Assembly (NCBI GenBank): GCA_048772705.1
Contig: JBLWGC010000109.1
Location: forward strand, 1-64,000
Direction: 5' to 3'
Length of the DNA stretch: 64,000 bases
DNA from: Leidyana gryllorum EB-2025a
Taxonomy: Eukaryota; Protista; Apicomplexa
The notes beneath the pieces are model-generated. The model saw only the letters and a list, made by a program, of their open reading frames with translations. It was not told the DNA's origin and searched no databases. Numbering within the stretch: the stretch's first letter is position 1; each line of letters opens with the position of its first letter. The position numbers were made by a program, and so were the translations under genes. This document shows, one piece after another, positions 37,315-37,779 of this stretch.

Positions 37315-37779
37315 TTAGAACTTGTCGCCGATATCGGTGAGGGGGAGCGGGGCGTCTCCATTGATCATCTTTGAGGCGTCAGTGAGTATGGCTTGGGGTC
37401 TTCGGTTAGGTTCTTGCAGCGCTTGAGGCATCCTACGACCGTCATTCCTCCATCCAGCGGGTTCCCTCCGGCCGTCATTCCTCCATCCAGCGGGTTCCCT
37501 CCGGCCGTCATTCCTCCATCCAGCGGGTTCCCTCCGGCCGTCATTCCTCCATCCAGCGGGTTCTCTCCGGCCGTCGTTTCGCCATCCGGCAGGAGCCCTC
37601 CGGCCGTCATTCCGCCATCCCTGAGGAGATGCAGCAGGCGGCGGTGGACCCATTGCCGCAGGCAGATATGTACCCCACCCCGAGGCCATCATGGGAAGTG
37701 CGTTAGTATCACAAGTGGACCAAAAGTTGGCGTTCGTGGATACGATAAGAGAGCATATTGATAGGATTCGAGCCCACAT
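37315..37779 (-). CDS. Secreted propeptide-like repeat protein (154 aa) with six GWRND-GRR units
   Basis: Signal-like MWARILSICSLIVSTNA; the repeat copies differ at synonymous positions in this frame. Confidence 0.75.
   Translation of the reverse strand: MWARILSICSLIVSTNANFWSTCDTNALPMMASGWGTYLPAAMGPPPPAASPQGWRNDGRRAPAGWRNDGRREPAGWRNDGRREPAGWRNDGRREPAGWRNDGRREPAGWRNDGRRMPQALQEPNRRPQAILTDASKMINGDAPLPLTDIGDKF
37432..37621 (-). repeat. 33-bp coding tandem repeat, about 6 copies
   Basis: Unit ggccgtcattcctccatccagcgggttccctcc on the plus strand. Confidence 0.95.

Follow-up and report, generated by a model that had tools for sequence, protein, structure and literature searches.

An orphan, apparently secreted short-repeat protein with precursor-like architecture in a gregarine genome

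The repeat gene and its reading frame

The window, a stretch of 64,000 nucleotides of Leidyana gryllorum contig JBLWGC010000109.1, carries on its minus strand an open reading frame (ORF) of 154 aa at 37315-37779, apparently a single exon, with its ATG at 37779 and no GTRAG-like donor inside. A longer open frame encloses it, and an in-frame upstream ATG at 37839 would add an N-terminal extension of 20 aa (37780-37839), yielding a product of 174 aa. The 154-aa ORF begins with a signal-peptide-like N-terminus (residues 1 to about 14-17; 37729-37779), followed by a Pro/Ala/Met-rich spacer of 33 aa without a dibasic site (residues 18-50; 37630-37728). The repeat array then comprises six 33-nt units of the form X-P-x-G-W-R-N-D-G-R-R (37432-37629), all on the minus strand and all as described in the initial annotation of this DNA: SPQGWRNDGRR (unit 1, 37597-37629), APAGWRNDGRR (unit 2, 37564-37596) and four copies of EPAGWRNDGRR (units 3-6, 37432-37563). 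TRF describes the array as 5.7 copies of period 33 with a 91% match and no indels. The repeated peptide ends in Gly plus a dibasic site in all six units, the Gly before RR being invariant, and X-Pro follows every RR.

Directly after the array lies a seventh in-register 11-mer (37399-37431), in which the core is replaced and Pro2, Gln3 and the terminal RR are retained. Its nucleotide identity to unit 1 is 14/33; of random 11-mers, 0.37% match the amino acids of unit 1 at four or more positions, the observation of a seventh unit being post hoc. Its RR would probably stay uncut, since Pro follows directly, and unit 1 would remain joined to the spacer, which offers no dibasic site. The unique C-terminal tail (37318-37398) has no evident transmembrane or GPI-like hydrophobic end; counted from the sixth unit, the ORF has 38 aa of C-terminal tail. 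The protein is basic (pI 10.9), contains seven GW dipeptides and is predicted to be disordered. A single-sequence AlphaFold model, with residues 2-13 as its sole helix, has a pLDDT of 54, a low confidence that is consistent with disorder but is not proof of it.

To establish which frame of the array is translated, we compared the codons of its copies. Copies 3-5 are identical at the DNA level, so the codon variation rests on copies 1, 2 and 6; within it, all the codon variants listed earlier for this array were recovered. In the GWRNDGRR frame, nine differences are synonymous and three non-synonymous, the latter confined to units 1 and 2, within their first three residues; the two alternative frames of the minus strand give 2/12 and 1/14 (synonymous/non-synonymous). 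The core has undergone six independent changes, every one of them synonymous, where a synonymous share of 0.22-0.26 would be expected (P about 1-3e-4; range 1.2e-4 to 2.9e-4). The GWRNDGRR frame is thus under purifying selection, as the initial annotation had proposed for the peptide. Judged by this substitution pattern, which settles the frame, the GWRNDGRR reading is a real coding repeat. Such selection is proof of coding, not of a hormone role.

The frame test was needed because a shifted Gly/Met frame scores better in codon usage (0.12 vs -0.01 per codon for the GWRNDGRR frame, a measure that is not decisive for frame) and because a Gly/Met repeat elsewhere in the genome (L031) yields WRNDGGR as a shadow frame. 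Both observations would suit an array assigned to the wrong frame, with NPLDGGMTAGG as the true reading, or one that is non-coding. We consider this very improbable: the shifted frame is the one with 12 non-synonymous and 2 synonymous differences, it has neither a signal nor a plausible splice route, and on the non-coding side an RNA structure signal is absent (z -1.2) and Rfam gives no match. A further rival would be a product that is not secreted, its translation starting at the upstream ATG or at an internal Met and resulting in a cytosolic, low-complexity GW/Arg protein with RNA or protein as its binding partner. The in-frame ATG at 37839, the seven GW dipeptides and the high pI would agree with this, but the strong signal-like segment, whose own ATG has the better context, makes it unlikely. 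ATG 37779 has A at -3, as do most confident starts in the window, whereas ATG 37839 has C.

We scored signal peptides by a crude rule that combines hydrophobicity with the (-3,-1) positions. By this rule the N-terminus of the 154-aa ORF, whose h-region has a mean hydropathy of 2.9, scores on par with further proteins of this genome that are evidently secreted, which agrees with the signal-like start noted previously. Among ATG-started frames, only 6 of the 287 in the window and 0 of 128 in shuffles reached the same level. On these sequence features, the product is apparently secreted.

We also weighed an intron with its end immediately before unit 1 and dismissed it, as a consensus donor was not found. 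The Gly/Met-rich repeat mentioned above lies on contig C36 near 10011; its adjacent open frame consists of W-R-N-D-G-G-R repeats and is a trap for neuropeptide-like calls.

Genomic setting and searches for relatives

The genome searched comprises 15.5 Mb in 237 contigs, in which the repeat gene is single-copy. It lies in an island of orphan ORFs that, by sequence comparison, is fast-evolving and adjoins a conserved block of DOHH, AP2, helicase and MFS genes, syntenic in two public contigs (L034 and L035). The DOHH gene, 3 kb from the repeat gene, has its best named matches in Gregarina and Blabericola, and next after it comes the gene for an AP2-domain protein at 42053-43417 (minus strand), an apicomplexan marker conserved in both contigs. 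The repeat gene is thus probably native to the gregarine, and the assignment of this DNA to an apicomplexan genome, made initially from the letters alone, is upheld. Contamination or recent transfer, for which the initial annotation had suggested a check, left no sign: the gene has no detected homologue, its context is gregarine, and its GC content is 0.59 vs 0.49-0.59 in the window. Within the parasite genome and the sequence databases, there is likewise no animal homologue and no foreign context that would point to a host-derived gene, and the gene is native-looking.

The island contains other orphans. An ORF of 283 aa at 39494-40345 (plus strand) shares 30% identity with its positional orthologue (L034, 1-480), compared with 84% for the adjacent DOHH. 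A putative gene of 63 aa at 36890-37081 (minus strand) combines a signal-like start with two DGR triplets. It occurs once in the genome, is not a paralogue of the repeat gene and has no match in Pfam or the ESM Atlas. Its W-T-P-R-L-G motif bears a weak resemblance to pyrokinins, with no basic residue after the motif. Further along, at 36158-36211, is an intergenic 15-nt tandem repeat of 3.6 copies, one frame of which reads GRRQL, so that G-R-R repeats arise by chance too.

Searches with the 154-aa ORF retrieved zero homologues at E<=1 from a set of 5.8 billion sequences, a top score of only 0.77 from the ESM Atlas, and no match from Pfam, JGI metagenomes or exact look-ups. A phmmer search over 1.84 billion sequences returned 78 matches, essentially limited to the repeat. 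Most of these are unrelated low-complexity proteins whose matches are driven by composition, and WRND occurs in only one of the 78. A few are genuine animal repeat precursors with G-K/R-R sites (Steinernema, Saccostrea), and a few others resemble fungal KEPs; at the level of sequence, these matches reflect a common architecture and not homology. The ENA protein P0144, matched by repeat composition only, has a fungal KEP-type look, with a signal-like start, repeats ending in W-R-R and then a longer unique region.

We also looked for the gene by position. In the relative's contig L034, the sequence stops inside the 283-aa neighbour, about 2 kb short of where the repeat gene would lie; in L035, the genes upstream of DOHH are unrelated; and L076 begins at DOHH. 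A search anchored on a 679-aa neighbour yielded no relatives. Within the genome, zero paralogues were found, the three near matches being unrelated and one of them the shadow frame of the Gly/Met repeat. A second precursor of this kind was not found either, although the genome-wide search, run with a triple G-dibasic DNA pattern, was so swamped with mucin-type repeats that it carries no information.

Processing enzymes and the dibasic sites

The initial annotation proposed that the protein could release several amidated EPAGWRND octapeptides through a convertase, a carboxypeptidase and an amidating enzyme. For amidation of this type, PAM is the only enzyme (PMC6529398). The PHM domain models PF01082 and PF03712 gave no candidate in the genome; prokaryotic controls were silent too, and introns may hide a gene. 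Such an absence is weak alone, yet it agrees with the reported loss of PAM in several alveolates, and the result leans towards absence. PHM- and PAL-like sequences have been reported in a dinoflagellate (PMC6529398). The amidation step thus found no counterpart in our search.

The same holds for the kexin/furin step. The convertase P-domain (PF01483) was not found in the genome by a search whose control was positive. The genome does contain 36 S8 subtilase matches (L005-L024; contigs C35, C43, C230 and others), partly in tandem arrays. Inspection of 20 of these loci showed subtilisin-type motifs in all, with some variant catalytic His motifs, and kexin-type motifs in none. The carboxypeptidase step fared in part: three M14 loci are present, one with a signal-like start, for which the trimming of basic residues is putative only, and a Kex1-type S10 carboxypeptidase was not found in the genome (control positive). 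A DPP-IV of the STE13 type was also not found in the genome, its control again being positive. The suggestion that an N-terminal Glu could cyclise gained ground, since a glutaminyl cyclase of the Pfam Glu_cyclase_2 family is present (G000:C230:350821-351513; L071, L072) and its Plasmodium counterpart converts an N-terminal Gln or Glu to the cyclic form (PMC9436314). Gene content gives no evidence of the canonical convertase-PAM route, and N-terminal capping and perhaps trimming are possible.

To judge how often such sites would be expected by chance, we drew 11-mers from proteins of the window and of selected loci. A dibasic pair occurs in 16% of random 11-mers from window proteins and in 6% of those from two secreted low-complexity proteins; G-dibasic occurs in 1.1-1.7%, and G-dibasic-X-Pro, a pattern chosen post hoc, in 0.2%. 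Given these frequencies and a genome rich in coding-type tandem repeats, one or a few units with a G-dibasic site are expected by chance. Against chance stand the X-Pro after every RR of the array, the exact register of the seventh RR, and five 9-aa units between RR sites, where the computational definition of KEPs asks for at least three repeats of 8-100 aa between KR/KK/RK/RR sites (PMC7329392). The context of each site in the six units is D-G-R-R, with Asp and not Arg at P4 and an Arg at P6. A stable octapeptide in the gut lumen is disfavoured, because trypsin-like enzymes there would also cut the internal Arg-Asn bond of W-R-N.

Interpretation and comparison with known systems

Our leading explanation, held tentatively, is a lineage-specific, secreted and intrinsically disordered gregarine repeat protein that acts mostly intact. 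Cleavage of the signal would leave a chain of about 15 kDa displaying six Trp/Arg-rich units with alternating charge, which could behave as multivalent stickers through cation-pi and electrostatic contacts. Such a chain may be adhesive outside the cell, as part of a coat, of mucus or of a cyst matrix, or may bind one partner repeatedly, and the G-R-R would merely belong to the duplicated unit. This explanation suits a frame under purifying selection that has a signal-like start and neither a fold nor a family, as well as the fast-evolving upstream neighbour. The failure to find PHM, the P-domain, Kex1 or DPP-IV in the genome, together with the subtilisin-type motifs of the inspected subtilases, suggests that regulated cleavage may be lacking. 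The D-G-R-R site itself has no P4 Arg, unlike the RSRR cut in Cryptosporidium GP60, and units of this sort are expected by chance. Conversely, small size, a signal-like start, repeats that end exactly at RR, X-Pro after the array RRs and a seventh RR in register amount to a precursor-like design. If the protein works intact, it would be another orphan secreted repeat protein, of modest interest.

That design is the starting point of the strongest competitor, a KEP-like polyprotein, which we rate as possible but less probable than the intact protein. Here, a parasite subtilase would cut after RR in the secretory pathway, releasing four copies of unamidated EPAGWRNDG and one of APAGWRNDG (computed neutral mass of the former, a Gly-extended 9-mer, 1000.44); an M14 carboxypeptidase would trim Arg, the glutaminyl cyclase might cap the N-terminal Glu, and the peptides would serve as signals from parasite to parasite or from parasite to host. 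The 11-mer that still carries both Arg residues would have a neutral mass of 1312.64, and a pyroGlu cap would lower the masses by about 18.01. The repeat part of the KEP definition describes the array well, X-Pro follows each array RR as in STE13-type precursors (PMC9769878), and the amino-acid changes sit at the unit's N-terminus. The S8, M14 and glutaminyl cyclase genes offer candidate enzymes, and the Arg at P6 also speaks for cleavage. A precedent comes from Cryptosporidium GP60, in which deletion of RSRR abolishes processing and the subtilisin CpSUB1 is reportedly the enzyme (PMC11411101). These points are countered by the Asp at P4, by the kexin, P-domain, Kex1 and DPP-IV genes that were not found in the genome, by S8 and M14 enzymes whose preference for basic residues is putative, and by gut trypsins, which would sever the peptides internally; nor did the swamped genome-wide search supply a second precursor. 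Going one step further, the units of a true multi-copy precursor would be released, pyroGlu-capped and amidated by divergent parasite enzymes or by those of the host, and EPAGWRND-amide (computed neutral mass 942.43) would act as a hormone mimic on receptors of the host gut or on fellow gregarines. The invariant Gly before RR in 6/6 units, the dinoflagellate PHM- and PAL-like sequences and the retrieval of genuine animal precursors by the profile search, including oyster R-N-I-G-K-R repeats, lend themselves to this idea. We nevertheless think it unlikely: it depends on a PHM/PAL pair undetected in the parasite (with the prokaryotic controls also silent) or on host enzymes, PAM has been lost in several alveolates, and the animal matches cover the repeat alone, contain WRND in none and rank among composition-driven junk; neither APGWamide nor AKH is matched. 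To our knowledge, a C-terminal Asp-amide is unusual among neuropeptides. Our literature searches found nothing on the amidation efficiency of Asp-Gly substrates, and no report of neuropeptide-like precursors in gregarines or of amidation in apicomplexans. Were the units released, multi-copy peptide precursors, familiar from animal neuropeptides and fungal KEPs, would extend to Apicomplexa without a kexin, and there would be a defined signal candidate through which gregarines might pair or manipulate the host gut.

Among known systems, the repeat gene belongs to a known kind, that of orphan secreted short-repeat proteins with precursor-like architecture; the enzymes expected for amidated precursors and for KEPs are either not found in the genome or present as candidates only. 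It resembles fungal KEPs (alpha-pheromone type with X-Pro/X-Ala STE13 motifs; Ustilago Rep1) in its signal-like start, its short repeats between dibasic sites and the X-Pro after each site, and in being small, lineage-restricted and without a sequence family. It differs in being non-fungal, with no sequence homology, no detected Kex2-type protease, Kex1 or STE13/DPP-IV, and a cleavage that is putative. With animal amidated multi-copy precursors (oyster RxIamide-type, nematode FLP-type) it shares a signal-like start, a spacer, a similar period and repeats ending in G-dibasic; but its core is W-R-N-D, the match is confined to the repeat, the peptide would end in Asp, and no PHM or convertase was found in the gregarine genome.

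The initial annotation also saw a loose likeness to APGWamide and to the PGW of RPCH/AKH, which does not hold beyond the presence of Pro, Gly and Trp in the gregarine unit. AKH/RPCH peptides carry P-G-W near the C-terminus and end in an amidated Trp. The gregarine order is P-x-G-W in mid-peptide, and its Trp, followed by the three residues R-N-D, is neither C-terminal nor amidated, whereas APGWamide is defined by its C-terminal GW-amide (PMC4200219). The amidated peptides of Chlamydomonas provide a protist precedent for peptide signals (PMC6919629, PMC6529398), but they depend on PAM, which was not found in the gregarine genome. Closest in lineage is Cryptosporidium GP60 (gp40/15), which differs in having one RSRR site with a P4 Arg, in being a GPI-anchored mucin and in yielding two proteins and not many peptide copies; like the gregarine product, which is apparently secreted, it is a secreted apicomplexan protein that carries a paired-Arg site, and it sets a precedent for basic-site cleavage in the phylum (PMC11411101).
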